Of a stretch of 64,000 nt of DNA, positions 3,011 to 24,826 are shown in pieces; the stretch's first letter is position 1, and each line of letters begins with the position of its first letter. The stretch lies in assembly GCA_025594325.1 (NCBI GenBank), contig JANHCV010000004.1:992001-1056000 (forward strand). The letters are read 5' to 3'. A program made the position numbers and the translations under genes. This DNA is from Blastocladiella emersonii ATCC 22665 (Eukaryota; Fungi; Blastocladiomycota). A model generated the notes under the pieces. That model made no database searches, was not told the DNA's origin, and was given only the letters and a program-made list of their open reading frames with translations.

Positions 3011-3526
3011 GATGCTATTGCGAAACGGACATTATATAGTACCCATTTGACCAACTCATTGATGCGTGTCACCACCGGGGCACTTGCTGACTGGGAGGAA
3101 TACCCCCGTCGTCCAACTTGGCGAGCGCGAATCGACCCCCCCCGTGTGGTTTCCCGCACCTCCCGCACTTCTGTCCACGGTGACCGTTTGCTGCGTGCGA
3201 AGCTGCGTACCGTAGATTTACTTGTTCTGCTGGCAGCGAACGTATGACTAGCGTGCGAGGCGGCTCTGCCGCTTGCGTCCTCTCGCACCTGCTTTGCACA
3301 CAATCAATGTTCAGCGAGGACACATCAACCGCGGCCGGACAGAACAATGTGATCTGGTGATGCGCGACATGAGAAACGCTTAGCGACATGCGGCCTATGA
3401 AGCTGTGATGAGGTATTGATTGGGACGCGTTGCGCCACTCACATGATCGCGACTTGAGTCGAGCCAGGGGATCTGGTCGAGTACAAGAGCATTGCGAGCG
3501 AGTGCGGGACCAAGGGTTCTGAAGAA

Positions 3527-3949
3527 GTGCATATCGAGGCCAAGCCGAGCGCTGGGGGTGCCGGAGCGGCGGCGGCTCCGCCGAAGCGCGAGATCCGGTC
3601 GCGCGACCTGGCCAAGGAGCCGTTCCTGGACGACACCGAGTACTACCAGGACCGCAAGGAGGAGTTCGATCTGCTCGTGCAGCTGATGCAGGAGAACCCG
3701 AAGCCGCCAAAGGCGCAGCACCAGCAGATCGACCTGTTCAAGCGGTTCCGCACGTACTGGCTGCTCGCGTGGATCATCATCAACGGCGGCCTGCTGTTCA
3801 TCCTGCTGTCGCCCGCGTCGGTCGGCATCAAGAACCCGGACTTTGCCGCGGGGTACCTCAACCTGCTGTTCAACGTCGTGCTCGGGTTCTCGGCGTTCCG
3901 GTTCGTCTTCTCGACGCTGTACCGCATCCAGAACGTGTGGTTCTCGTAG
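3527..3949 (+). pseudogene. Duplicated last exon of the chitin synthase (orphan 3' fragment)
   Basis: Same protein as CHS terminal exon 19731-19309 (VHIEAKPS...RIQNVWFS*). No upstream CHS exons on this side; in-frame TGA at 3455. Confidence 0.85.
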
Positions 3950-4110
3950 GTGCGACGCGACGACCGCCCGTCGTGCCCGTTTGTGATGTTATCCCTCCCC
4001 TACCCTTTGTGAATTTGCGTTTTTGCTCTCATACACCTCCGGTCCTTGTCTCTCGTATCCCTCGCGTCCAAACTCGCAGCCATGAGCCAAGACTTGAACG
4101 AGCTGCTGCA

Positions 4111-4419
4111 TCCACACCACGACAGCGCCCGACTCGCGGGCCCACTGCAGGTTGGTGAACGAGAACTTGGCGATCTGCAGCTGCGCGGCCGTCGACAGCA
4201 CGATGATGGCGAGCAGGATGACGGCGATCAGGGCAAACGACGCGATGATGCCGTGGAACACGCCGCGCGCCGATTTCGGGTTGTTGCCGAGCGACGCGAT
4301 GAAGGTCATGAGCAGCAGCAGCAGCGCGTAGAAGGGCCGCGACACGAGCAGCACCGCGCGCAGCACCTGGAACCCGGCCGAGTTCTCGTTGCTCGGGATG
4401 AACTTGACGTTGTCGGCCG
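4111..4419 (-). pseudogene. Copy of internal CHS exon segment (mirror of 18839-19147)
   Basis: Direct-orientation copy of 20245-20547 ([29 protein letters not shown]...RESGAVV). Confidence 0.9.
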
Positions 4420-4987
4420 GGTCTGCGACTGGGACAGCTGCTGGGCGCAGTTGCAGCCGAGCTGTATCTGCGACTGCGACTCGGGAACAAGCGAAAGTGG
4501 AGAAGCGTGGCCAAGGACTGTTGCCGCAGCCGTCGCGGTTCAGCAGCAGCAGCGGCGCCCCGCATACCTCGACCTCTCACTGCAAGGCGCGCAGCGGCTC
4601 ACGGGGCCTGCAGCTTCACCTGACCCGTGCGGACCCGCGGCGGATGCGCAGTGACTTATTGCTCTCTCAAGCCCCCGCAGTCTCTACCCGCCTCGACCAA
4701 CCGAGCCGAGAGAGCAGGTCGATGCCGCTTCAACTCAACTCAGCGGACGTTGCCCCCGAGACGGCGGCGCAATCCACGACCACGATCCATCCGATTATAT
4801 TGCAGGGAGTGCAGTGCTTCATGGTAGTGGGCGAGTGAGGGCGCAAGGGAGGGGCCGCGGCGGCGCTCGTCCGTGGCATGGGACACGGAGCGATCAGCGC
4901 GCTGTCTCGCCCCGCTCACGTGTTTGTTCGACGCGTCTCCACTTTCTCGTGTTCTCGCACGGTCGAGGGGCGAGACAAATAGGCGCA

Positions 4988-5047
4988 ATAGAGATAGACA
5001 TAGAGATAGACATAGACATAGACATAGACATAGACATAGACATAGAG
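4988..5047. repeat. (GACATA/GAGATA)n hexanucleotide microsatellite, mirrored at 18211-18270
   Basis: About 10 tandem hexamers read directly. Confidence 0.95.
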
Positions 5048-5982
5048 GTAAAGAACGGGATGTAGTTTGTTCAAACAGAGAGAGACCACGGCCAACCGAC
5101 GCCGCGGTTCGGTCCCACGCGCCGTCGCGCTCGCTTGAGCCCGCCCCAGCCTCGTCTGGTCGGGCCGGTCGAGAACCGGCTCGCCGACTGACGCGCGTGT
5201 CACATGCTGCAGTACGAGAGGGTCAAGTGGAGGAGAAGGGGTCAGAACGAGGAACGGGTCCCGATTAATGGGAACTGCGACACCGCCGCCACGACGCACG
5301 ACTTGGGATGCACCAAAGGTCGCTACCCCACTCACCGCTGGCGCGTCGAAACCACCCACAACCCAGCTCCATCCAGCCTGCCCTCGAGGTTGACAACGAC
5401 CCCAGCCGACCAGCAGAGAGAGTCCCATACTCGCAGAGGTGCCGCACCATCGGTCCCGCTACTCGCTTGGCGAGGTCACCGCGCGGGACGGGTGATGCGG
5501 CACGTGCGTCGAGGACCCTTCGCGGCGCGATCCAGGAGACGATGACGAGTTGGAGAGACAGCGGACGAGGGAGCGATTGGTGGGTATGCGACAAGAGTCT
5601 GGACGATGGGTGCGCGCAAGGGGTGAAGAGGCAGCAGCCGACTGCGGGAGCGGCACACCTTGGATGCACCCGTTTTGCACGCCGCAGGTAGGCTGATACA
5701 ATGGGTTGGCTTCCCAGACGGGATGCGAGGGAAACATCAAGGGGAGGTGAGGTGGTGGAGGGGAGAGGAGGTGCGTCGCGATACAGGAGCCGTGCGGGGC
5801 GGTGATGGGGACGCGCGAGTGAAGTGCGCGCGAGCGGGTCGACGTGTACCAGTCCAGCAATGTTGGGCGAGACGAGACGAGACGAGCAGCGTGTCGAGGT
5901 CGTAGATGGCCATGGTCGGGACGCAAAGCGTACGCGGGGTGAATGTTCTTGGGCGCGGTAGCAGTGGGATGGTGTCGAGAGT

Positions 5983-8900
5983 CTGTTCGGGAGATGAGCA
6001 AGCAAAGAGTCAGCGAGTAGCACTCGGGATGCGAGTTGGAGATGAGCCGTACCGAGTCCCAAAGTGGTCGACGAGTTGAGGTACCCGACGGCCCGCCTCG
6101 AGCGCGAGTACTTGAGCCGCGCAAGCAAACGTGACACTGTTGAGGGCCTGGTCCGCCGCGGTGCTGGTGGTGGTGGTTGGTCTCTCGAGTCGGCGACGTG
6201 TACCAGAGTCCGACGAGATGTTGAGGCTGTCGTAGCTACACGAAGCGGCGGTGTGAGCACGCGATCGGTCAACCGCGGCGGCAGCAGAATGTACGAGTGC
6301 CGTAAAACCCCTCGATGATCACCGTGGACCGCCGAGAGCGTCGAGCTGCGACACGACCTCCTTGAGCAGCGTGTACGAGCGCTTGTTGAGAACTCGGTCG
6401 GCCGTCGTGACTGACGTCGCACGGCAACATGCCCGTGTTAGAGCCTGACGAAATGTCGAAGCCGAGTGGGCCACGGAATCGACGTGGACAAGAACAGCTT
6501 GCGCGCACGCGTGGTGGCCAAGTCGTGGCCCTGGTCGTGTGGCACCTACGCGAAACGGCAGTGTGAACACGCGATCGGTCGACCGCAGCGACAGCAGAAC
6601 GTACGAGTGCGGAGAAACATATCGATCACCACCATGGACCGCCGGTAGAACTCGAGTCGCGAGAGCCGCGACTGCTGCAGCCGATCAGGCGCGTGAGAGC
6701 GTGAAGACGACCCCAGCCGCTGTGGTGATGGTGCAGCCCCACGCCGTGTTGATGGCCTGGCGACGCCAGGCTCCGCCGGACTTGGGGTTGATGCGCCACG
6801 ACCACTACACGATGCACGAGTCAGCTACGAGGTTTCGTTTGCAGGAGCACACGTTGCAAAGTACCGAGAATGTACGCCCAGCTGGCGCCAGAATGGTCGG
6901 CGACCAGGCGCGTCGCGTCGGCGATGTGCGCCAGAGCCCGACGAGGTGTTGAAGCTGCCGAACCGCCGCTGGATCAATCTGGACGCCGACGAGATCATGT
7001 CGCGCGCGCGAGGCGACGATCGTGATGTGGTTCCACCCGTTCTGTGATGGCTACACGAGGCAAACGGGTGAACACGCGATCGGCAACCGCGCTCGGATCA
7101 GGACATACGAACGCTGGGGCGTTACTGTACCCCCCTTGGTTACCATGAACCGCGCGAGTCTCGAGCTGCGGCTGCCGTCGATCAGGTGCGCGGGAGCGCG
7201 ACGTCGAGCTGGTTCTCGATCCCGACGCGATGCTGAGGAGGAACCGCCGCCACTTGATCAGTGCGGGCGCGGGCGAGTAGAAGTTGCGCGCGCGCACACG
7301 AGGCCTGGATGATGGTGTTGTGGTGGCGCGACGACTACACGAGGGCAGCGATGTGAGCATGCGATCAGCTGACCGCGGCGACGGCGGAACGTACAAATGC
7401 CGTGAAAGTCCTTGACAATCACCGCCGAGCGCCGAGCGCCGAAAGCGTTGAGCCGCGTCTGCCGCCGATGAGGTTCAAGAGTGTGGTGGCGACCCAGCTG
7501 CTGCGTCGACGGCACGGCGATGTCGCGCAGTGCATGGTCGCGCGAGTAGATCGACCCGCAACGGTGGTCACGGGCAAGTGGATGGGGAGGAGCTTGTCGA
7601 GCGCGAGTAGGTGAGACGCGATGGCGCGCGTGGCGGTCGACGACTCGGTCGGCATTGGCGATGGCGGTCGTGGCAGGCGCCGCGCGGTGAGAGGCACGTA
7701 CTGGAAGCCGACCCGACGAGATGGTGAGGCTGAGCCGGCGACTGCATCGACGCGGAACGAGAACGTCGCGCTCGCGCGCGTCATACTGGCACGTCATACC
7801 GATCGTGCGCAGGCCACACAAAGCAAAGGGGTGAGTGAACACGCGATTTGCCAGCTGCGCCAAGATGAGAACGTACGGTTGCTGAAATAGAGCTCCTTGA
7901 CCACCAAAAACCACACGATTGTCGAGCCCTGGACGCCGTGGATCAGGTACGAACGAGAAGACGTGATGGCGAGCGAACTTGACGATGCGTCGACGGCAGG
8001 GCAGGGCGCCGCAGAGCTTGGCCAGGATCGCGCGCCGACCTGTCACGGCGGCCGCGAGAGCATGGAGATGACGAGGAGCGCCTAGATCGCGCACGTACTT
8101 ACGCAGCGAGTGCACGCGTTGTTGATGATGAACTGGTCGACCTGGGTGACGGCGGTGGTTGGCGCCGCGCATGTCGCCGCGCGTATTTACTTGAATCCGA
8201 CGAGATGGTGAGGCCGAGCCGCCACTGGATCGACGCGGGAGCAGAAGTGAACCAGTCGCGCGCGCGCGAGGCCATGATGGTGTCGCGGTAGTGCTGCGGC
8301 TACACGAGCTCGAGGTCGAGTAGTGAGTACGCGACTGGCCAACTGCCCAAAAATCGGGTCGTACAAACGCTGAAGCCGAACCCTTTGGTCGCCGTAAACT
8401 GTGCAGATGTCGAGTCATGGCCGCCGTCGATCAGGTGCGCGAGAGCGCGACGTCGAGCCGGTCCTCGAGCCCGACGAGATGTTGAAGAGGAACCGCCACC
8501 ACTTGATCGATGCGGACGCGGGCAAGAAGCAGGTTGTGCGCGCGCGAGCCCTTAATGATGGCGTCGTGGTGGCGCTAGGACTACGCGAAACAGCGGTGTG
8601 AACATGCAATCGGTCGACCGCACAGAGGTTACGACAGGGCGTACGAATGCCGAGGAGCCCTCGACGATCATGGTGGAGCGCCGAGAGCGTTGCGTCGCGA
8701 CTGCCGCCGATCAGATGCGCGCGAGAGCGTGAAGACGACCCGACCCGACCCGGCTGCCGCGCCGACAGCACGGCGCGGTGCTGCCGAGCATGGCCGAGCG
8801 AGTGGATCGGTCCACAACGGCGGCCACGAGCACGAAGATGATGATGAGCTCGTCGAGCGCGAGTAGGTGGGTTGAAGACTCGGTCGGCCTTGACAATGGC

Positions 8901-9943
8901 GGCCGTGGCAGGCGCCGCGAGGCGGGAAGCACGTACTGGAATCCGACGCGACCCGACGAGATGATGGTGAAGCTGAGCCGGCGACTGGATCGACGCGGGC
9001 GCGAACTTCGCGCGCGTCGCGTCATACTGGCGCGTCATACCGATCGTGGGCCGGCTACACAAAGCAAAGGGGTGAGTGAACACGCGATTGGCCAACTGCG
9101 CCAAGATGAGAACGTACGATGGCTGAAGTCGACCTCCCGGGTCACCGTGAGCTGCGCGAGCGCCGTGCCCTGGACGCCGTGGATCAGGTACGAGAAGACG
9201 CGATGGTGAACTTGACGACGCGTCGACGGCACAACAGGGCGTTGTTGGGCTTGGCCAGGCTCGCACGTCGACCCGTCACGGCGGCCACGGGCATGGAGAT
9301 GACGAGGAGCTCCTTGCGCACGAGTGCTAGAGCTGCGAGTGCGCGGCCATGACCATGAGGATGGCGAGGAGCGCCTCAATCGCGCGCGTACTTGAGCAGC
9401 GGGTGCACATGTCGTTGGCGAACTTGGTCGGCCTTGGTGATGGTGGTAGTGGTTGGCGCCGCGCGTGTCGCCGCGCGTACTTGAACCCGACGAGATGGCG
9501 AGGCCGAGCCGCCACTGGATCGACGACGCGGTAGCGTACGAGAACAGGTTACGCGCACACACGAGGCCGCGATGGCGCCGTGGTAGTGCTGTGACTACAC
9601 AAGGAAGAAGTGTGAGTACGCGACCGGCCAGCTGCCCAGAGATCAGGCCGTACGAAGGCCGAACCCGAACTACTTGGTCGCCGTGAACTGCACGAGCGTT
9701 GAGCCGTGGACGCCGTCGATCAGGCGCGCGAGAGCGTGATGCCGCGCCGCGCTTGTCGCCGAGCATGGCCGGGCGAGTAGGTCGATCCGTCACGGCGGCA
9801 ACGAGCATGACGCGGGCGGGAGGAGAGCGAGAAGGAGAGGAGCGAGACGAGGAAAATCGAGCTCTACACAAGAGTTACGGGCGGGATGGCACGAGGATAA
9901 CAAACGGGAGTCAGCAACACGATCATATTGTTGTTGCTGGTAC
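5983..9943 (-). repeat. Degenerate tandem exon+intron cassette array (left-arm copy)
   Basis: Mirror of 13315-17275. Confidence 0.85.
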
Positions 9944-10081
9944 GGGGAGGCGTTGCGACCGGGCCGTTCGAGGAAGGAAGGGCATGATGAGGATGAGGCA
10001 AGTCGTGGTCGCGGCCACCGACACTAATGACGGCCGAGGGAAAGGAATGAGAGAGATGAGCGCGAGCCTCCTCAACCAATG

Positions 10082-10220
10082 CGTCTCGCCGCCGCCGACG
10101 CTCAGGATGAGAGAGGGAAGGAGATGAGAGCCCGCCGCCGACGCTCAGGATGAGAGGAGGTGATGGTGAAGGGATGGGAGCGTCGGCCACCGACTCGTCT
10201 CGCCGCCGCTGACGCTCAGG
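10082..10220. repeat. Three-copy ~24-bp mini repeat CGCCGCCGACGCTCAGG(ATGAGAG), mirrored at 13038-13176
   Basis: Copies near 10090, 10133 and 10201 (variant) separated by purine-rich linkers. Confidence 0.85.
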
Positions 10221-10835
10221 GTCGGGAAAGCGAGGAAGGAGGAGATTCGTCGTCGAGATAAGCTTGAAAGTCCCCCGTACCATTCATGTTCATGCGCGCG
10301 CACACACACACGGGCAGCGAGCGAGGCGAGGTGATGGTTGATACATGGTGTTGTGCGGGAGGATGCTCGACCCGGATCGGATCGCGGGGGCTGATCATGG
10401 TCGATGCGTGCGCGCCGTCGAGTACTGGCGGTTGCAGGGAGTATGGAGGGCGCGAGCGCGAACGTTGGAGGGAGAGGGTAGGCCGCGGGAGCGCGAGCGT
10501 GCGGCGGTAGCGATGGTGCCCGGGCGGGCAGCAAGGCGCGCATCGCGACGCGCCTGGATCAGTGCGTGAAACTACATTTTCGAGCGGATCATAACATAGC
10601 AACGCCGGGAATGAGTCGCGGCGCGAGACACGGCGGGTGCGGCGTGCGCAAGTGTCTCGCGCGGTGTCTCGCGGCTCTCATCAAGAGTGGCGAAAACGTT
10701 CACGTGCGCCCGCTGGCGGGGACCATCGTCGATTGCCGCGGTAAGAGGAGCGCGGCGGCGGGGGACGCGTCTCGAAAATGGAGACACCCGGGACGCGTCG
10801 CGCCCGATGCGAGACGTCACGCGAGCGGCGCGTGC

Positions 10836-12422
10836 GTGCGAGATCTTGAGACAACTCGTGATAGGCAGCGCGCCGCCCGGAGCCTCCACGCGTTACGCAA
10901 CATTCGCGAGAAGTCACACGAGCGATAACATGACGCGGGAGCGTGAACGCCTCACCAATGTGTTTGCCGCGGCCTGCTGTTTGGCTCTCCTTCGTGGCTC
11001 ACGATCGATTGGAGCGGTCAACAAGCCTGCGAGTCCGTCGGCGCGCCCTGAGCGCCTTGAAGCCGCTGAAGATGGCCACGACGCAGCGAGTTCAACCACA
11101 GCGGATCCTTCTCATGCTACTCCCTTCCTGGCTCATATCAGCGTCACCGATGCACTGGGCCCGTGCTTGCGTCGAGGGCACGGACTCGCGGAAGATTGCG
11201 GGCTTCTGACGCGGTACAAAAAGGTGTACTTGTCGTGGTTGAGCACACGACCAGTGCGAGCCCTGCCAAGGAGGCGGCTGCCGCCGAACGCTGGTGTGGA
11301 CAGCTGCATGGCGTGGAAGACGATCGAGCGGGCTCGGCAAACCTCCACGAAAACGAGACTCAGAGCGGATCCGGGCGACATGGACGAGAATCGGCGAGAT
11401 TGGGGAGAAGCCGAGGGGGTTGCCCCATGTATTGCTTTCGAGTTCCATGAGCCGTCACGGCGCGAGTTCTGCTGCATGAAGTCAAGTGCGAGGAGTGCGG
11501 GTCGGGCGTCGAGAATGGCGAGGAAGATGGCGTACCAGCGGGGATAGTCGGGCGGAGCGCAAGCCAGAGCGCGAGCCACCTCGAGCAGGCGTGGGCGTCG
11601 ATCACGTTGCTCCTGCAGGGGGCGCAACGCGACGTGTTTGACTGCGCACGCTCTCGCGCTCTACACAAGATCACCGGTATCAGACAGCGGGAGTGTTGAG
11701 TCCGGAGGCACATGAAGCAAAATGCTGACCGGACCTTCAGCGGTCCCGTGGCCGAAGGGGTAGTACGGGCCGTTGCACGCGCGACTTGGCCTCGAGCCGC
11801 AAGAGCCCGATCGCGAAGCAGGACTCGTTGAGGTGGTGTCTCGCCCCACTCCCGTTCAGCTCCAGGAACGATCTAAGCAACGCTAAGGTCACGCATGGCG
11901 AAGTCGATGCGGGTGGGACGCGCGAGGCTCGCGGATGGGTCGGCGATGGTTACGATGTTCGCAAAGCGACGGCCCGTCTGGATGTGGCCAACTGAAGCCG
12001 AGTGGCGCATCTCGAGCAGTGCGATTCTCATACACATGATATGAGTTGGTCCGTCGTATCGCTGTACATGGGCGAGATCATGGCGGCTGCCGCAGGAACA
12101 GACCGATACTGGAGTAGGAGCAGGGATATCGTTGCAGCTAGTTCCCGGGGCTTCTGTGCATAGGATTCATGGTCTCGACAATTGTCGATTTTGACATGAG
12201 TGCGAGGGAGAGCAGCGATCGACGAGGCGATCACGCAGGCGATCACGAAGGCGAAAGCACTCAGCAACGGGTCACGTGGTGTGAGCGACACGTTCGCTCT
12301 GTGAGCCGGCTTCAGGATGTTTTTTGACACCGGGCAGACACCCGTCATGATTCTCATCATGATTCTCGATTTTTCCTATAAGCTTGCTCACATTGATCCC
12401 GGACGAACCCCCGCGCCGCGCG
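10836..12422. other. Unique 1,587-bp palindrome spacer (loop)
   Basis: Symmetry breaks exactly after 10835 and before 12423. Visibly less GC-rich than the genes. No recognisable family. Confidence 0.9.
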
Positions 12423-13314
12423 GCACGCGCCGCTCGCGTGACGTCTCGCATCGGGCGCGACGCGTCCCGGGTGTCTCCATTTTCGAGACGCGTCCCCCGC
12501 CGCCGCGCTCCTCTTACCGCGGCAATCGACGATGGTCCCCGCCAGCGGGCGCACGTGAACGTTTTCGCCACTCTTGATGAGAGCCGCGAGACACCGCGCG
12601 AGACACTTGCGCACGCCGCACCCGCCGTGTCTCGCGCCGCGACTCATTCCCGGCGTTGCTATGTTATGATCCGCTCGAAAATGTAGTTTCACGCACTGAT
12701 CCAGGCGCGTCGCGATGCGCGCCTTGCTGCCCGCCCGGGCACCATCGCTACCGCCGCACGCTCGCGCTCCCGCGGCCTACCCTCTCCCTCCAACGTTCGC
12801 GCTCGCGCCCTCCATACTCCCTGCAACCGCCAGTACTCGACGGCGCGCACGCATCGACCATGATCAGCCCCCGCGATCCGATCCGGGTCGAGCATCCTCC
12901 CGCACAACACCATGTATCAACCATCACCTCGCCTCGCTCGCTGCCCGTGTGTGTGTGCGCGCGCATGAACATGAATGGTACGGGGGACTTTCAAGCTTAT
13001 CTCGACGACGAATCTCCTCCTTCCTCGCTTTCCCGACCCTGAGCGTCAGCGGCGGCGAGACGAGTCGGTGGCCGACGCTCCCATCCCTTCACCATCACCT
13101 CCTCTCATCCTGAGCGTCGGCGGCGGGCTCTCATCTCCTTCCCTCTCTCATCCTGAGCGTCGGCGGCGGCGAGACGCATTGGTTGAGGAGGCTCGCGCTC
13201 ATCTCTCTCATTCCTTTCCCTCGGCCGTCATTAGTGTCGGTGGCCGCGACCACGACTTGCCTCATCCTCATCATGCCCTTCCTTCCTCGAACGGCCCGGT
13301 CGCAACGCCTCCCC

Positions 13315-16300
13315 GTACCAGCAACAACAATATGATCGTGTTGCTGACTCCCGTTTGTTATCCTCGTGCCATCCCGCCCGTAACTCTTGTGTAGAGCTCG
13401 ATTTTCCTCGTCTCGCTCCTCTCCTTCTCGCTCTCCTCCCGCCCGCGTCATGCTCGTTGCCGCCGTGACGGATCGACCTACTCGCCCGGCCATGCTCGGC
13501 GACAAGCGCGGCGCGGCATCACGCTCTCGCGCGCCTGATCGACGGCGTCCACGGCTCAACGCTCGTGCAGTTCACGGCGACCAAGTAGTTCGGGTTCGGC
13601 CTTCGTACGGCCTGATCTCTGGGCAGCTGGCCGGTCGCGTACTCACACTTCTTCCTTGTGTAGTCACAGCACTACCACGGCGCCATCGCGGCCTCGTGTG
13701 TGCGCGTAACCTGTTCTCGTACGCTACCGCGTCGTCGATCCAGTGGCGGCTCGGCCTCGCCATCTCGTCGGGTTCAAGTACGCGCGGCGACACGCGCGGC
13801 GCCAACCACTACCACCATCACCAAGGCCGACCAAGTTCGCCAACGACATGTGCACCCGCTGCTCAAGTACGCGCGCGATTGAGGCGCTCCTCGCCATCCT
13901 CATGGTCATGGCCGCGCACTCGCAGCTCTAGCACTCGTGCGCAAGGAGCTCCTCGTCATCTCCATGCCCGTGGCCGCCGTGACGGGTCGACGTGCGAGCC
14001 TGGCCAAGCCCAACAACGCCCTGTTGTGCCGTCGACGCGTCGTCAAGTTCACCATCGCGTCTTCTCGTACCTGATCCACGGCGTCCAGGGCACGGCGCTC
14101 GCGCAGCTCACGGTGACCCGGGAGGTCGACTTCAGCCATCGTACGTTCTCATCTTGGCGCAGTTGGCCAATCGCGTGTTCACTCACCCCTTTGCTTTGTG
14201 TAGCCGGCCCACGATCGGTATGACGCGCCAGTATGACGCGACGCGCGCGAAGTTCGCGCCCGCGTCGATCCAGTCGCCGGCTCAGCTTCACCATCATCTC
14301 GTCGGGTCGCGTCGGATTCCAGTACGTGCTTCCCGCCTCGCGGCGCCTGCCACGGCCGCCATTGTCAAGGCCGACCGAGTCTTCAACCCACCTACTCGCG
14401 CTCGACGAGCTCATCATCATCTTCGTGCTCGTGGCCGCCGTTGTGGACCGATCCACTCGCTCGGCCATGCTCGGCAGCACCGCGCCGTGCTGTCGGCGCG
14501 GCAGCCGGGTCGGGTCGGGTCGTCTTCACGCTCTCGCGCGCATCTGATCGGCGGCAGTCGCGACGCAACGCTCTCGGCGCTCCACCATGATCGTCGAGGG
14601 CTCCTCGGCATTCGTACGCCCTGTCGTAACCTCTGTGCGGTCGACCGATTGCATGTTCACACCGCTGTTTCGCGTAGTCCTAGCGCCACCACGACGCCAT
14701 CATTAAGGGCTCGCGCGCGCACAACCTGCTTCTTGCCCGCGTCCGCATCGATCAAGTGGTGGCGGTTCCTCTTCAACATCTCGTCGGGCTCGAGGACCGG
14801 CTCGACGTCGCGCTCTCGCGCACCTGATCGACGGCGGCCATGACTCGACATCTGCACAGTTTACGGCGACCAAAGGGTTCGGCTTCAGCGTTTGTACGAC
14901 CCGATTTTTGGGCAGTTGGCCAGTCGCGTACTCACTACTCGACCTCGAGCTCGTGTAGCCGCAGCACTACCGCGACACCATCATGGCCTCGCGCGCGCGC
15001 GACTGGTTCACTTCTGCTCCCGCGTCGATCCAGTGGCGGCTCGGCCTCACCATCTCGTCGGATTCAAGTAAATACGCGCGGCGACATGCGCGGCGCCAAC
15101 CACCGCCGTCACCCAGGTCGACCAGTTCATCATCAACAACGCGTGCACTCGCTGCGTAAGTACGTGCGCGATCTAGGCGCTCCTCGTCATCTCCATGCTC
15201 TCGCGGCCGCCGTGACAGGTCGGCGCGCGATCCTGGCCAAGCTCTGCGGCGCCCTGCCCTGCCGTCGACGCATCGTCAAGTTCGCTCGCCATCACGTCTT
15301 CTCGTTCGTACCTGATCCACGGCGTCCAGGGCTCGACAATCGTGTGGTTTTTGGTGGTCAAGGAGCTCTATTTCAGCAACCGTACGTTCTCATCTTGGCG
15401 CAGCTGGCAAATCGCGTGTTCACTCACCCCTTTGCTTTGTGTGGCCTGCGCACGATCGGTATGACGTGCCAGTATGACGCGCGCGAGCGCGACGTTCTCG
15501 TTCCGCGTCGATGCAGTCGCCGGCTCAGCCTCACCATCTCGTCGGGTCGGCTTCCAGTACGTGCCTCTCACCGCGCGGCGCCTGCCACGACCGCCATCGC
15601 CAATGCCGACCGAGTCGTCGACCGCCACGCGCGCCATCGCGTCTCACCTACTCGCGCTCGACAAGCTCCTCCCCATCCACTTGCCCGTGACCACCGTTGC
15701 GGGTCGATCTACTCGCGCGACCATGCACTGCGCGACATCGCCGTGCCGTCGACGCAGCAGCTGGGTCGCCACCACACTCTTGAACCTCATCGGCGGCAGA
15801 CGCGGCTCAACGCTTTCGGCGCTCGGCGCTCGGCGGTGATTGTCAAGGACTTTCACGGCATTTGTACGTTCCGCCGTCGCCGCGGTCAGCTGATCGCATG
15901 CTCACATCGCTGCCCTCGTGTAGTCGTCGCGCCACCACAACACCATCATCCAGGCCTCGTGTGCGCGCGCGCAACTTCTACTCGCCCGCGCCCGCACTGA
16001 TCAAGTGGCGGCGGTTCCTCCTCAGCATCGCGTCGGGATCGAGAACCAGCTCGACGTCGCGCTCCCGCGCACCTGATCGACGGCAGCCGCAGCTCGAGAC
16101 TCGCGCGGTTCATGGTAACCAAGGGGGGTACAGTAACGCCCCAGCGTTCGTATGTCCTGATCCGAGCGCGGTTGCCGATCGCGTGTTCACCCGTTTGCCT
16201 CGTGTAGCCATCACAGAACGGGTGGAACCACATCACGATCGTCGCCTCGCGCGCGCGACATGATCTCGTCGGCGTCCAGATTGATCCAGCGGCGGTTCGG

Positions 16301-17275
16301 CAGCTTCAACACCTCGTCGGGCTCTGGCGCACATCGCCGACGCGACGCGCCTGGTCGCCGACCATTCTGGCGCCAGCTGGGCGTACATTCTCGGTACTTT
16401 GCAACGTGTGCTCCTGCAAACGAAACCTCGTAGCTGACTCGTGCATCGTGTAGTGGTCGTGGCGCATCAACCCCAAGTCCGGCGGAGCCTGGCGTCGCCA
16501 GGCCATCAACACGGCGTGGGGCTGCACCATCACCACAGCGGCTGGGGTCGTCTTCACGCTCTCACGCGCCTGATCGGCTGCAGCAGTCGCGGCTCTCGCG
16601 ACTCGAGTTCTACCGGCGGTCCATGGTGGTGATCGATATGTTTCTCCGCACTCGTACGTTCTGCTGTCGCTGCGGTCGACCGATCGCGTGTTCACACTGC
16701 CGTTTCGCGTAGGTGCCACACGACCAGGGCCACGACTTGGCCACCACGCGTGCGCGCAAGCTGTTCTTGTCCACGTCGATTCCGTGGCCCACTCGGCTTC
16801 GACATTTCGTCAGGCTCTAACACGGGCATGTTGCCGTGCGACGTCAGTCACGACGGCCGACCGAGTTCTCAACAAGCGCTCGTACACGCTGCTCAAGGAG
16901 GTCGTGTCGCAGCTCGACGCTCTCGGCGGTCCACGGTGATCATCGAGGGGTTTTACGGCACTCGTACATTCTGCTGCCGCCGCGGTTGACCGATCGCGTG
17001 CTCACACCGCCGCTTCGTGTAGCTACGACAGCCTCAACATCTCGTCGGACTCTGGTACACGTCGCCGACTCGAGAGACCAACCACCACCACCAGCACCGC
17101 GGCGGACCAGGCCCTCAACAGTGTCACGTTTGCTTGCGCGGCTCAAGTACTCGCGCTCGAGGCGGGCCGTCGGGTACCTCAACTCGTCGACCACTTTGGG
17201 ACTCGGTACGGCTCATCTCCAACTCGCATCCCGAGTGCTACTCGCTGACTCTTTGCTTGCTCATCTCCCGAACAG
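13315..17275 (+). pseudogene. Decayed multi-intron repeat gene / exon+intron cassette array
   Basis: Twelve intron-like segments, mostly GTA[CT]...[CG]TGTAG, 58-80 nt. They are separated by homologous exon-like units (consensus-like HxxxIIxASRARNxFSxAPASIxWRxxLxISSGS and AHLIDGxxxSTLAQFTxTK). Motifs fall in shifting frames with stops. Confidence 0.7.
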
Positions 17276-18838
17276 ACTCTCGACACCATCCCACTGCTAC
17301 CGCGCCCAAGAACATTCACCCCGCGTACGCTTTGCGTCCCGACCATGGCCATCTACGACCTCGACACGCTGCTCGTCTCGTCTCGTCTCGCCCAACATTG
17401 CTGGACTGGTACACGTCGACCCGCTCGCGCGCACTTCACTCGCGCGTCCCCATCACCGCCCCGCACGGCTCCTGTATCGCGACGCACCTCCTCTCCCCTC
17501 CACCACCTCACCTCCCCTTGATGTTTCCCTCGCATCCCGTCTGGGAAGCCAACCCATTGTATCAGCCTACCTGCGGCGTGCAAAACGGGTGCATCCAAGG
17601 TGTGCCGCTCCCGCAGTCGGCTGCTGCCTCTTCACCCCTTGCGCGCACCCATCGTCCAGACTCTTGTCGCATACCCACCAATCGCTCCCTCGTCCGCTGT
17701 CTCTCCAACTCGTCATCGTCTCCTGGATCGCGCCGCGAAGGGTCCTCGACGCACGTGCCGCATCACCCGTCCCGCGCGGTGACCTCGCCAAGCGAGTAGC
17801 GGGACCGATGGTGCGGCACCTCTGCGAGTATGGGACTCTCTCTGCTGGTCGGCTGGGGTCGTTGTCAACCTCGAGGGCAGGCTGGATGGAGCTGGGTTGT
17901 GGGTGGTTTCGACGCGCCAGCGGTGAGTGGGGTAGCGACCTTTGGTGCATCCCAAGTCGTGCGTCGTGGCGGCGGTGTCGCAGTTCCCATTAATCGGGAC
18001 CCGTTCCTCGTTCTGACCCCTTCTCCTCCACTTGACCCTCTCGTACTGCAGCATGTGACACGCGCGTCAGTCGGCGAGCCGGTTCTCGACCGGCCCGACC
18101 AGACGAGGCTGGGGCGGGCTCAAGCGAGCGCGACGGCGCGTGGGACCGAACCGCGGCGTCGGTTGGCCGTGGTCTCTCTCTGTTTGAACAAACTACATCC
18201 CGTTCTTTACCTCTATGTCTATGTCTATGTCTATGTCTATGTCTATGTCTATCTCTATGTCTATCTCTATTGCGCCTATTTGTCTCGCCCCTCGACCGTG
18301 CGAGAACACGAGAAAGTGGAGACGCGTCGAACAAACACGTGAGCGGGGCGAGACAGCGCGCTGATCGCTCCGTGTCCCATGCCACGGACGAGCGCCGCCG
18401 CGGCCCCTCCCTTGCGCCCTCACTCGCCCACTACCATGAAGCACTGCACTCCCTGCAATATAATCGGATGGATCGTGGTCGTGGATTGCGCCGCCGTCTC
18501 GGGGGCAACGTCCGCTGAGTTGAGTTGAAGCGGCATCGACCTGCTCTCTCGGCTCGGTTGGTCGAGGCGGGTAGAGACTGCGGGGGCTTGAGAGAGCAAT
18601 AAGTCACTGCGCATCCGCCGCGGGTCCGCACGGGTCAGGTGAAGCTGCAGGCCCCGTGAGCCGCTGCGCGCCTTGCAGTGAGAGGTCGAGGTATGCGGGG
18701 CGCCGCTGCTGCTGCTGAACCGCGACGGCTGCGGCAACAGTCCTTGGCCACGCTTCTCCACTTTCGCTTGTTCCCGAGTCGCAGTCGCAGATACAGCTCG
18801 GCTGCAACTGCGCCCAGCAGCTGTCCCAGTCGCAGACC

Positions 18839-19147
18839 CGGCCGACAACGTCAAGTTCATCCCGAGCAACGAGAACTCGGCCGGGTTCCAGGTGCTGCGC
18901 GCGGTGCTGCTCGTGTCGCGGCCCTTCTACGCGCTGCTGCTGCTGCTCATGACCTTCATCGCGTCGCTCGGCAACAACCCGAAATCGGCGCGCGGCGTGT
19001 TCCACGGCATCATCGCGTCGTTTGCCCTGATCGCCGTCATCCTGCTCGCCATCATCGTGCTGTCGACGGCCGCGCAGCTGCAGATCGCCAAGTTCTCGTT
19101 CACCAACCTGCAGTGGGCCCGCGAGTCGGGCGCTGTCGTGGTGTGGA
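18839..19147 (+). pseudogene. Inverted 309-bp copy of an internal CHS exon segment, 162 bp past the CHS stop
   Basis: Versus source 20547-20245: 5 substitutions and two 3-nt insertions by my manual alignment. Confidence 0.92.
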
Positions 19148-19308
19148 TGCAGCAGCTCGTTCAAGTCTTGGCTCATGGCTGCGAGTTTGGACGCGAGGGA
19201 TACGAGAGACAAGGACCGGAGGTGTATGAGAGCAAAAACGCAAATTCACAAAGGGTAGGGGAGGGATAACATCACAAACGGGCACGACGGGCGGTCGTCG
19301 CGTCGCAC

Positions 19309-22300
19309 CTACGAGAACCACACGTTCTGGATGCGGTACAGCGTCGAGAAGACGAACCGGAACGCCGAGAACCCGAGCACGACGTTGAACAGCAGGTTGA
19401 GGTACCCCGCGGCAAAGTCCGGGTTCTTGATGCCGACCGACGCGGGCGACAGCAGGATGAACAGCAGGCCGCCGTTGATGATGATCCACGCGAGCAGCCA
19501 GTACGTGCGGAACCGCTTGAACAGGTCGATCTGCTGGTGCTGCGCCTTTGGCGGCTTCGGGTTCTCCTGCATCAGCTGCACGAGCAGATCGAACTCCTCC
19601 TTGCGGTCCTGGTAGTACTCGGTGTCGTCCAGGAACGGCTCCTTGGCCAGGTCGCGCGACCGGATCTCGCGCTTCGGCGGAGCCGCCGCCGCCCCGGCAC
19701 CCCCAGCGCTCGGCTTGGCCTCGATATGCACGTCCTCAGACCCTTTCGTCCCCCAGCTCGTCTCTGCGGGCGGGCAAATTTGAGTGTTGGTAAGTGTCGG
19801 TGAGTGGGGTGAGTGGTGGTGGATGCGGAGAGGTAGAGGTCGAGTGGTGGCGGTGATCGCGAGTCGGCCGGGGTGGATCGGAGGTCAAAGGAAGCGAGTG
19901 AGTCACGCAAGGAAACGTACCCGAGATGTTGCTGAACGCGAAGATCTAGACAAATGTTCCGATGGATGATAGTTGTGGGCGGTGGGCGGTGGGCGGTGGG
20001 TGGTGGTGGGTGGTGGTGGGTGGAGTTGGACGGTGGTGGCGAAGATCAAGCGAGGGCAGTGAGTTGGACACATTTGAGCGACGCTTCGTGAGACAGGAAC
20101 GGACGAAACGTACCTGCAGGACGTTGATGTAGAACGGGCTGAGCAGCGTGTACTGGATGATGTTGAAGATCGGGTGGTACCAGTCGCCGTAGATGAGCGA
20201 CGACACGATGTAGAGGCCCCACGTCGCGAGCAGCGCGAGCAGCGTCCACACGACGGCACCCGACTCGCGGGCCCACTGCAGGTTGGTGAACGAGAACTTG
20301 GCGATCTGCAGCTGCGCGGCCGTCGACAGCACGATGATGGCGAGCATGATGACGGCGATCAGGGCAAACGACGCGATGATGCCGTGGAACACGCCGCGCG
20401 CCGATTTCGGGCTGTTGCCGAGCGACGCGATGAAGGTCATGAGCAGCAGCAGCGCGTAGAAGGGCCGCGACACGAGCAGCACCGCGCGCAGCACCTGGAA
20501 CCCGGCCGAGTTCTCGTTGCTCGGGATGAACTTGATGTTGTCGGCCGCGGGCTGCTCCATGAACTTGACGAACCCGGCGACGAGGTAGTGGTACGAAAAG
20601 TAGAAGTTGCAGAGCGAGATGTAGCTGAAGATGAAGTTGAGGATGAGGTACGCGAACTCGAACGACAGGACGAGCTTGCGGACGAACGTGTGGCCCGACG
20701 TCCAGATGCGGTTGGCGTGCATGAGGGCGTACAGCAGCGCGAACGTGGACCCGTTGAGCCAGCGGCGACGCTGCGGGATGAGCTCGGTGAACTCGTCGGG
20801 CGCGTCCGTCACGGCCACCGACGACTTGTCGTACCGCAGCACCCAGCCGGCGTCCTTGCGGGTCGTGATTTCGAAGCACAGGATGCTAAGGAAAGGCGAG
20901 ACGTGAGTGGACAGGGGCGGCGAGGGCAGAAAGCGAGGAGGGGCGAAGGACAAGGGACGCGTACCGATCTTCCGCGAGGTACATGTTCCGCTGGAAGATA
21001 CCGCCAGATACCTCGACTTTTTCGCCGTAGAAGTACTCCTGGAGCGGGCGGCCCTCGAGAGCGGCGTAGCGATACGCGGAGAAGGCTCCGGGAAGTACCG
21101 TGATGTACCCCATCATACTTTCGATCGGCTTGTCCAAAATGTTGCTCATTTTGTACTCGAAATTCTGCGCAGCGACGATCGGGTTGAGCAGCGACTTGAA
21201 ATCGCCCTCGACGGCGATCTCGCCGCAGGCGCCGCCGACCTGGGGGTCGAGGAACATCTTCCAGAGGCGGTAGATGGACAGCGGCTGCGGCTGGGTGCCG
21301 GCGTCGATGAGCACGACCACGTTGGGCTTGAGGACCGGGCAGAAGGCCGTGAGGGCCCAGCGGTGCGAGTTGATCTTTTTGGCGTTCTTCTCCTTGAGGC
21401 AGAAGATGGTCTGCATCGGCACGATCTTGCGCTTGGTCGACGTGAGGTTGTTGACGAGCGTCGTGCCCTTCTCGGGCGCCGAGTCGAAGTTGTTGGTGAT
21501 GGTGGACTCGAACAGGTGCGCCGAAACGTCCTCGCCGTTGAAGGTGGCCCGGATCAGGCCGTCGCGGTAGCCGCCCATCATGGACAGGATCGTGATCACG
21601 GCCGGGTCGATCTTAGCCCTACCATCTGAGACGATGGCGACAACGACCTTGCGCCAGGCGTCCTCCTGGCCCCAGTGGGCCGAATCGGCGTCCAGCATCT
21701 GCCGAATGTTGTCGTGCACCGCCTGCATCGTTTTTACAAAAAGTTGGCCTGGTTCCTGCACAAACGGGCGAGAAACAGTCAAAACAAGCGATTCCCAGCG
21801 ATTCCCATCGATACCCGTCGATTCCCGTCGAGTTAGAAGAAAGGGGAGCGCGTACGTTGTACATGGTGACGACGATCATGAGCTCGATGTCGTTCTTCGA
21901 GTGGATCAGGTTGTACTTGCCGGGGAACTCGGCGGGCGTGCCCGTGACGGCCGTGTAGCGAAGCCTAAACGTTGGGATCAAAAGGAAGCGAAGGGATGAG
22001 TGAGAAAGTGAGTGGGGAGCGGGCGAGGCGCGAGGCGCGAGGAGGCGGCCGCGGCCACGCGACGCGTTCGGCAGCCACGTACGTCGTGAACTCACTGTCC
22101 TGGCCGGGCTGTAGCAGCTGCGGCGGGATCTTGACCGTGACGGGGTTCGGCTGGCCGACCTGAGCGCGGATCGTGAGGGCCTTGGCCGGGTCGAAGGCCT
22201 CGCCGTTGGCCGCGGCCGCGACGGTCGGCGACACCGTGGCCGCAGCAGCACCGGCACCGAGGGACGTGGTGGCGGCGTAGGTCGTCGTCGTCGTGGCCGT

Positions 22301-23476: not shown

Positions 23477-24826
23477 ATGTTCGCGTGCTGCCTCACGCCG
23501 CCGCCGCCGCGCTGCCATTCGCCCATAAAACCCGCGCCGGTCTCGTCCCCGACGCTGCAGCTGCCGGACTTGCCCGCTGAGCTGCAGGAGCGCGTCCTGC
23601 TGCGCCTGTCCGCGCTTGACATCGCGCGGCTCGCTCGCGTCGCGCGGTCGTGGCGTACCATGCTCATCACGGCCGACGAGTCGCTCTGGCGCTCGCTGCT
23701 CGCGCGACACGCGCCGGACCTCGCGCCCGTCGTCTTCGCGTGTCTCGCACGACACTCGCGCGAGTTCCGCATGCGCGACGTGTACCGCGTGGTCCTGAGT
23801 CCGCGGCGCGTCGTCGCGGTGTGGGGCACGGGCGCCGCGGCCAAACTCGTCGACCCGCCGCTCGAGCCCGGGTACCGCGAGCTGGTCGAGCTCAGCACGT
23901 CCATGCGGTCATCCCCGCGCCAGGTCGCGTGTACGGCGCACGCCGTGTTCGTGGTCCACGGCGACGGGTCCGTGTGGATGCTCGGCCACCTGCGCAAGGG
24001 CACCAGGGCGTACCCTGGCCGCGGGATCGGGCGCGCGTGGACGCAGCGCGTCGAGCGGGTCGTGACGGCGGAGACCGCGGTCGCGTTCCAGTGCACCGAC
24101 GGCCGGTGGTACGTCCCGCGCGGCGACGGCGACATGGACGCGGAGCTCGTCCCGGCCGAGGTTGGCGGGATGGCGGGCGGCGGCGGATCGGCGCTCGTCT
24201 TCCGCGACGCGGTCGCGTGCGTCAAGCTCACGGGCAACGACGCTGAGTCGGTCCCCTGCACGCACCGCCGCGTGCACTCGGTCGGCCACACGGACGCGCT
24301 CGGCGCCGTGATCGTGACGGGGTGCAGCATCTACCGCGAGCCACCACCACCTACCGACGATGCCGACGTGCCGCCAACGCCAGGCCGGTGGCCGCTGCAG
24401 TGGCGCATCGAGGCCTGGCGCGTCCCGAGCGCACCCGGCCGCGCACCCGCCGAGTCGGACGAGCTCGACTCGATCGTCACCGTGTCGTGCTCCAAGGACG
24501 ACGTACTCGCGCGCACCCGCACGCGCTTGGTCACCACGGGCCCCCAGGGGACGCGCGTGCACCGGTTCGTGGCGCGCGACGCGTCGGCGGCCGTGGCCGA
24601 GCGCCGGTTCGCGGCGATCCGCGACGACGGCACGGTCTGGGAGTGGGGCTGCGACGCGCAGCGCGACAAGCCGCAGCGCGCGTGGATCATGCCCGACGAG
24701 TCGGTCCTGGTGCCCGTCCAGATCGCCGTCGGCGCGAGCGGGATGACGGCCGTGGTCGCCATCGACCTCTCGCCCGCGATCGTGCTGCTCCCGCCGGTCC
24801 CGTACTCGGTGTGCGCTGTTCAGTAG
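23477..24826 (+). CDS. F-box protein with RCC1/BLIP-II-like repeats
   Basis: LPDLPAELQERVLLRLSALDIARLARVARSWR is an F-box consensus. QVACTAHAVFVVHGDGSVWMLG and FAAIRDDGTVWEWG are RCC1-like blades. Single ORF. Confidence 0.8.
   Translation: MFACCLTPPPPRCHSPIKPAPVSSPTLQLPDLPAELQERVLLRLSALDIARLARVARSWRTMLITADESLWRSLLARHAPDLAPVVFACLARHSREFRMRDVYRVVLSPRRVVAVWGTGAAAKLVDPPLEPGYRELVELSTSMRSSPRQVACTAHAVFVVHGDGSVWMLGHLRKGTRAYPGRGIGRAWTQRVERVVTAETAVAFQCTDGRWYVPRGDGDMDAELVPAEVGGMAGGGGSALVFRDAVACVKLTGNDAESVPCTHRRVHSVGHTDALGAVIVTGCSIYREPPPPTDDADVPPTPGRWPLQWRIEAWRVPSAPGRAPAESDELDSIVTVSCSKDDVLARTRTRLVTTGPQGTRVHRFVARDASAAVAERRFAAIRDDGTVWEWGCDAQRDKPQRAWIMPDESVLVPVQIAVGASGMTAVVAIDLSPAIVLLPPVPYSVCAVQ

Follow-up and report, generated by a model that had tools for sequence, protein, structure and literature searches.

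Whether long non-coding RNA (lncRNA) splicing is functional in itself is debated across eukaryotes, and to our knowledge spliced lncRNAs are almost undescribed in zoosporic fungi. The upstream same-strand regulatory lncRNAs of yeasts (SRG1-SER3, prt-pho1, nc-tgp1-tgp1 and ICR1-FLO11) mostly stay unspliced and are not known to be repetitive. Algal introners and the introner-like elements of fungi are present as many similar short-intron copies per genome, dispersed into unrelated genes. In the long intergenic non-coding RNAs (lincRNAs) of human and other vertebrates, constraint on splice motifs is the main constraint (PMC4245815, PMC4338330). Here, we describe an array of exon- and intron-like units at positions 13,315 to 17,400 of a 64,000-nt stretch (the window; contig JANHCV010000004.1, positions 992,001 to 1,056,000) of the genome of the fungus Blastocladiella emersonii ATCC 22665. 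The array is probably the body of a multi-intron non-coding transcription unit, a candidate spliced lncRNA, to which we assign a probability of roughly 0.55.

The closest match of the array unit is the class of multi-exonic lincRNAs constrained mainly on splice-related motifs (PMC4245815, PMC4338330), since in both the exons are near neutral, the splice motifs are kept, coding capacity is lacking and no fold is conserved. However, lincRNAs are defined by observed transcripts, whereas the array unit is known here from sequence alone, and it further differs in being made of nine tandem cassettes, in its early-diverging fungal host and in belonging to a six-locus family that lies partly in palindromes. 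Like the yeast upstream lncRNAs, it is a non-coding unit upstream of, and in the same orientation as, a gene with its own promoter, but its link to the downstream gene is purely positional and is absent in the window's copy. As with introners, a single short intron sequence recurs within the genome in many similar copies. The introns of the array, however, were amplified together with exons, and 40 of the 41 genome-wide matches to the monomer-type intron pattern fall inside the six family loci, with their homologous exons (own-genome searches covered the 32.65-Mb assembly of 21 contigs); an introner family was rejected on this ground. What is new here is the tandem amplification of exon plus intron, a six-locus family of which part sits in palindromes maintained by gene conversion, and the occurrence in an early-diverging fungus.

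The window's copy, C16 (contig 16), is one of six loci in this genome that form a family of non-coding units, each roughly 6-7 kb long; its paralogous loci are C15a, C15b and C15c on contig 15, C1 and C19. The family unit comprises a spacer, then an inner block, then the array, and finally a conserved outer part that reaches to about 18,787 in the window.

Array architecture and coding potential

All 12 intron-like units listed in an earlier sequence-only reading of the window were found at their coordinates when the sequence was read and each unit checked (Table 1). They start with GTAC or GTAT and end with TAG or CAG, except the unit at 15382-15444, whose mutated acceptor (TGG) had been pointed out before. 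A YTNAY branch-like motif lies 11 to 26 nt upstream of the 3' end in 11 of the 12 units; the unit at 13315-13394 lacks one and has only GTAAC at 12 nt. The earlier reading took 11 to 12 cassettes to be homologous. This stands for nine, which align over ~283 columns and share the core RTCGCRTRYTCAC ... GYGTAG, and not for the intron-like units beginning at 13315, 16383 and 17206, which are unrelated to the nine monomers. The proposed A-B-C superunit of ~1.25 kb is real: 13913-15061 and 15142-16320 are 73% identical over 1216 nt, and further self-alignment pairs have offsets of 1241 to 1289 nt. Tandem Repeats Finder called no repeat in the array, because the superunit exceeds its period limit of 500 and copy identity (64 to 77%) is close to its limit of ~70%. 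A regular expression describing the intron grammar matched 12 times in 13315-17400, compared to a mean of 0.94 and a maximum of 6 in 300 Markov shuffles. The best explanation of this architecture is that the array was built long ago through tandem amplification of one exon-plus-intron cassette in an A-B-C superunit.

The units follow the pattern of introns native to this fungus. Described B. emersonii introns are mostly 60 to 79 nt long, with GT/AG ends and a CTAAC-like branch (PMC2773782). Introns predicted in the Pfam-supported genes of the window, whose long open reading frames (ORFs) match PI3/PI4-kinase, P4-type flippase, SLX1, F-box and CorA, carry GTACG and a CT[CGA]AC branch, in many cases also (G)TGTAG; most measure 56 to 80 nt. 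The array units are 58 to 80 nt long and all lie on one strand, and their scored branch motif lies 15 to 26 nt from the acceptor (17 nt in six of the nine monomers). The array strand is rich in C and T (GC skew about -0.14, AT skew about -0.15), the same skew as on the sense strands of these Pfam-supported genes. The sole match to the monomer-type pattern outside the family, C1:2,868,683-2,868,740, is a 58-nt intron-like sequence that shares TCGCGTGCTCAC ... GTGTAG and is otherwise unrelated; the extended branch context may belong to the normal intron consensus of the species.

Does the array encode a protein? Substitutions show no codon-phase bias between C16 and C15a, C15a and C15c, C15a and C19, or C15a and C15b (every 150-300-nt window). 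Indels between paralogous copies are mostly not multiples of three, most being 1, 2, 4, 5 or 8 nt long, and those that separate C15a from C15b inside the array measure 8, 3 and 1 nt. Frames chained across the 12 proposed introns contain 9 to 15 stops in every chain, so that the broken reading frame described earlier is confirmed, and the same test at the other family loci found no open frame chain with a protein-like translation; frame chaining and exon searches were run exon by exon or on exon pieces, without the joined spliced sequence. Pfam gave no match for 20 plus-strand ORFs and the exon pieces, and a word-indexed search of 5.8 billion proteins with the 386-aa array ORF gave none either. 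When an exon peptide was searched against the own genome in six frames, it returned the family loci only, far more weakly than the DNA search, and no intact donor gene. By these criteria the array stretch does not code for protein, and the protein-coding options are rejected. Two of the three explanations offered in the sequence-only reading find no support: a decayed repeat-protein gene, which has no Pfam or protein relative and no codon-phase signal, and a silent variant-cassette library, which has no expressed coding homologue, the genome matches being five paralogous non-coding loci only.

No structured RNA was recognized either. A tRNA scan was empty, and Rfam gave no match at gathering thresholds or at E<=1. 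RNAalifold predicted 0 pairs and no consensus fold for 29 monomers, and RNA folding therefore does not explain their conservation. In the ~500-nt conserved block at 17,503-18,010, RNAalifold draws one long hairpin; support for structured RNA is lacking there, since covariation is almost absent (term -0.45) and the sequence folds no better than its shuffles (single-sequence z = -1.45). A recognisable host gene for snoRNAs or other small RNAs was rejected on the empty Rfam result, the unit length of only 58 to 80 nt and the lack of a consensus fold, which leaves room for a novel small RNA.

Conservation of donor, branch and acceptor

Across 33 monomers from five loci (C15b was omitted as a near-copy), the 13 columns of GTACG, CTCAC and TAG have a mean conservation of 0.93, compared to 0.74 in the intron interior and 0.73 in exon columns. 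Random blocks of equal sizes reach 0.93 in 7 of 100,000 trials (block permutation p = 7e-5). Of the 33 monomers, 32 retain GT, 32 retain TAG and 31 retain the TCAC core of the branch. In comparisons of C16 with its positional counterparts elsewhere, signal sites are 0.90 to 0.93 identical and the remainder 0.74 to 0.84 (Fisher p 0.022 to 8e-7).

In a maximum-likelihood tree, the monomers cluster by array position and never by locus, indicating that the array is older than the locus duplications and that the signals survived that span. The monomers have diverged by ~25 to 35% from one another, and the splice signals were maintained through 12 to 25% divergence. The three units outside the monomer family behave alike: the C15a copies of 13315-13394, 16383-16453 and 17206-17275 are 99%, 97 to 98% and 87% identical, those of C15c are 89 to 94% identical, and all three are conserved above the background of their locus pairs. 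An intron-size indel, that is, a precise intron loss that would have proved splicing, was not seen between paralogues. As judged by this internal comparison of paralogues, donor, branch and acceptor positions are under selection, an excess that neutral decay of a protein gene cannot explain.

A candidate spliced non-coding RNA and its alternatives

Since the array is non-coding, carries splice signals conserved above background, has introns of native type and has the composition of a sense strand, a spliced non-coding RNA fits best, also among the three explanations offered earlier. How might such a unit work? Transcription would run on the plus strand of the right arm of the palindrome described below and start near the conserved block at 12,760-13,314, a candidate promoter-proximal region or first exon. 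The transcript would pass at least 12 short native-type introns, which would be spliced out, continue through the block at 17,503-18,010 and end near an A-rich motif at ~18,190. This motif is conserved near 18,187-18,200, with AATAAA only in C19. The likeliest role would be cis-regulation, in which transcription on the same strand upstream acts on a Gln/Ser-repeat gene, or else a function for which splicing itself is required. Cis-regulation is suggested because the unit ends shortly upstream of this gene at C15a, C15c and C19, a few hundred bases before its TATA box and ATG. The window's two copies of the unit point outward in the palindrome, so that their transcripts would be identical rather than complementary and the structure alone gives no hairpin RNA.

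The presumed target is a 267-aa Gln/Ser/Gly-rich repeat ORF at C15:988,217-989,020 (L016:6217-7020), with counterparts at C15c and C19. Its distinct C-terminal ~40 aa end in Cys-Cys, a TATA-like box (TATAAGA) lies ~110 nt upstream of the ATG at C15a, C15c and C19, and no Pfam family was found for this protein or its neighbour.

The unit is an unusually clean natural experiment, consisting of nine old tandem copies of a cassette replicated in six loci, in which only the splice signals and a few short blocks have escaped drift. Provided that RNA data confirm splicing, the locus would show selection on the act of splicing in a non-coding transcript and would make a tractable target, B. emersonii being a laboratory model. 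Should RNA data turn out negative, the way in which the unit is conserved would suggest that a motif grammar at the DNA level, mimicking introns, has gone unrecognised.

Several points weigh against a spliced lncRNA. Its transcription, splicing, start, end and role are all inferred from the DNA. Conservation of ~0.9 also extends to ~8 nt just 5' of the branch (ATCGCGTG), to two "exon" blocks, ATCTCGTCGG and CTGATCGACGGC, and to a second AAGTACG without a consistent acceptor, and therefore leaves room for motifs that act at the DNA level. The 33 monomers share descent, and identity between loci is mosaic (0.67 to 0.98), indicating interlocus gene conversion, which can inflate conservation locally and should not favour signal columns. 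The C16 copy has two damaged signals (the acceptor of 15382-15444 and position +5 of the donor at 16964) and lacks its presumed target gene, and may therefore be decaying. Two family-specific DNA patterns found no relatives outside the genome among metagenome contigs, so that constraint is measured among paralogues only.

The ~0.9 conserved blocks just described are what a DNA-level cis-regulatory array would predict, in which protein-binding sites form a very long control region of the Gln/Ser-repeat gene and the likeness to splice signals is incidental. The position of the unit upstream of the same gene at three loci and the lack of a consensus RNA structure are also in its favour. However, the three best-conserved blocks coincide with the native donor, branch and acceptor, in order and on one strand, and intron-like spacing and length are kept as well. 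The three unrelated intron-like units obey the same grammar, for which binding sites have no reason, and the C16 copy retains the signals without the gene. We regard such an array as unlikely.

Less probable again is a neutral relic, that is, a dead, formerly coding repeat gene or amplified junk with intact signals as leftovers. The broken frame, the missing protein family, exon columns as variable as intron interiors, and the damaged signals and truncated neighbouring gene of C16 all agree with decay. At the divergence of the monomers, however, most 13-position signal sets should have been destroyed, contrary to the counts of intact GT, TCAC and TAG and to the permutation test. The excess is also present in the younger, between-locus layer, which already had no codon-phase bias and mostly non-3n indels and in which neither a codon-phase trace nor a coding donor gene was found.

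Selection for splicing would also be explained if the array were a long, intron-rich leader, forming the 5' untranslated region of the mRNA for the Gln/Ser-repeat protein, with a distal promoter driving transcription in the direction shared by unit and gene at C15a, C15c and C19. This is improbable, because the TATAAGA box suggests that the gene has its own proximal promoter, several kilobases of stop-rich leader would be left after splicing, and the unit persists in C16 though the gene is gone; the A-rich motif near 18,187-18,200 hints weakly at termination before the gene.

Another option, which goes further than the spliced lncRNA favoured here and which we hold to be distinctly improbable, is an lncRNA family with splicing itself as its function, a splicing-status sensor or spliceosome sink that gates the Gln/Ser-repeat gene. 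In B. emersonii, heat and cadmium stress are known to bring splicing to a halt (PMC2773782). Having a dozen optimal introns in an otherwise freely drifting RNA would make the fate of that RNA highly sensitive to spliceosome capacity, and the palindromic duplication would double the dose of the unit.

It is very improbable that the array is a protein-coding gene that evolves fast, or a silent library of cassettes for such a gene. ORFs of 278 to 386 aa cross the array, and C15b has one frame chain with a single stop over ~2.2 kb. The ORFs, however, continue across the intron-like units without interruption, on a strand so rich in pyrimidines that stops seldom occur, their Arg/Ser/Pro/Ala-rich translation matches no family, codon-phase bias is lacking, and the genome has no expressed homologous acceptor gene. 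The C15b chain was rejected as coding: it is a composition effect on the same kind of strand, its translation is not protein-like, and the C15a/C15b indels break the frame.

Palindromic setting and neighbouring sequence

The right arm of a perfect inverted repeat houses the array; the two arms, 7,333 nt each, are 100% complementary (x+y=23258) and enclose a unique spacer (Table 1). The spacer has homologues at four other loci (87%, 87%, 79% and 75%), carries no coding signal and is G-rich on its plus strand, opposite to the right arm. C15a and C15b are also palindromic, their arms measuring at least 9 kb and their spacers ~1,560 nt. One contig 15 locus, C15c, is not palindromic, C1 has a different, smaller palindrome with an array remnant in its spacer, and C19 is an old inverted repeat that is 81% identical. 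Although C16 and C15a/b differ by 12 to 17% in sequence, the positions of their inner palindrome junctions correspond to within 8 nt, indicating that the palindrome predates the split of the loci and that its arms have stayed identical ever since, for which gene conversion is the simplest cause. This resembles gene-conversion-maintained palindromes such as those of primate sex chromosomes: arms that are 100% identical surround a unique spacer, and the structure is older than arm identity implies. The likeness, however, concerns the container only, since the cargo here is a non-coding unit and not protein-coding genes.

TABLE 1 Coordinates of the array, its intron-like units and associated features in the window
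Feature	Coordinates	Strand	Identity
Left arm of the perfect inverted repeat	3503..10835	-	
Mirror copy of the array in the left arm, identical sequence	5858..9943	-	
Unique 1,587-nt spacer between the arms	10836..12422	.	
Right arm of the perfect inverted repeat, carrying the whole non-coding unit	12423..19755	+	
Best-conserved block of the unit across C16, C15a and C15c, directly before the first intron-like unit	12760..13314	+	
Array of nine homologous exon+intron monomers and three unrelated intron-like units, non-coding	13315..17400	+	
Intron-like unit 1, GTACC ... GTGTAG, non-monomer type	13315..13394	+	99% to C15a copy
Monomer-type intron-like unit, GTACGG ... CTCAC 17 nt ... GTGTAG	13605..13663	+	
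Monomer-type intron-like unit	14141..14203	+	
Monomer-type intron-like unit, acceptor GCGTAG	14614..14677	+	
Monomer-type intron-like unit	14894..14958	+	
Monomer-type unit, broken acceptor TGG, sole TAG loss among 33 monomers	15382..15444	+	
Monomer-type intron-like unit	15864..15923	+	
Monomer-type intron-like unit, donor GTATGT	16150..16207	+	
Intron-like unit, CTGAC branch, non-monomer type	16383..16453	+	94-98% to C15 copies
Monomer-type intron-like unit	16654..16712	+	
Monomer-type unit, donor GTACAT (position +5 changed)	16964..17022	+	
Intron-like unit, CTGAC branch, CAG acceptor, non-monomer type	17206..17275	+	
Conserved ~500-nt non-coding block of the unit	17503..18010	+	91-93% to C15 loci, 79-83% to C19 and C1
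59-nt remnant of the Gln/Ser-repeat gene, promoter and ATG missing	18781..18839	+	

A chimeric origin of the palindrome from long reads, which would make the second array copy an artefact as well, is scarcely credible despite the fully identical arms, given the unique 1.6-kb spacer with homologues at four loci (one of them non-palindromic), the inner junctions shared by C16 and C15a/b, HiFi reads of ~10.5 kb (calculated from published base and read totals; PMC9730499) and the independence of the array itself from the palindrome. The arms contain tandem subrepeats and pieces of host genes (the Gln/Ser-repeat gene and a chitin-synthase fragment). In a comparison with foldback-type transposons, the subrepeats point towards such an element, and the gene pieces, the age and position-orthology of the arrays and the one non-palindromic locus point away from it. 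A centromere was rejected because two sister palindromes lie on one contig.

The junctions between arm and spacer (10760-10835 and 12423-12500) lie in GC-rich sequence, and each arm carries, ~35 nt from its junction, a short inverted repeat, GACGCGTC ... GAGACGCGTC. The site may be a hotspot, or a footprint of the palindrome's origin. In the sister palindromes of contig 15 the junction is 8 nt further in than in C16.

Two conserved blocks flank the array. The block before it is 0.93 to 0.96 identical to C15a and 0.95 identical to C15c up to ~13,090; beyond that point, where one short repeat is missing from C15c, identity to C15c is lower. A ~28-nt motif (CATCCTGAGCGTCGGCGGCGGCGAGACG) occurs three times within the block, which runs exactly up to the first intron-like donor. 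The block behind the array is C-rich in its first half and G-rich in its second, has counterparts at L016:4889-5394, L018:2317-2822, L014:7897-8431 and L015:8320-8826, and exceeds the family average of identity at each locus. Further downstream, a (TCTATG)x9.8 microsatellite occupies 18212-18270 in the C16 copy only, facing a 58-nt gap at the other loci.

Identity between C16 and C15c changes along the array. Positions 15623-16422 are 0.90 to 0.98 identical to C15:2,290,400-2,291,200, reaching 0.96 to 0.98 in three of four 200-nt windows, and positions 14,823-15,222 are only 0.67 to 0.69 identical to C15c. This mosaic suggests that gene conversion between loci acted in patches, or that copies of the array underwent unequal exchange. 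Paralogous genes with F-box and RCC1-like parts, at 23477-24826 of the window and at C15:2,285,530-2,286,900 (L013:4530-5900), adjoin both the C16 palindrome and the non-palindromic C15c unit. Segmental duplication that took adjacent genes along seems to have been the way in which the family spread.

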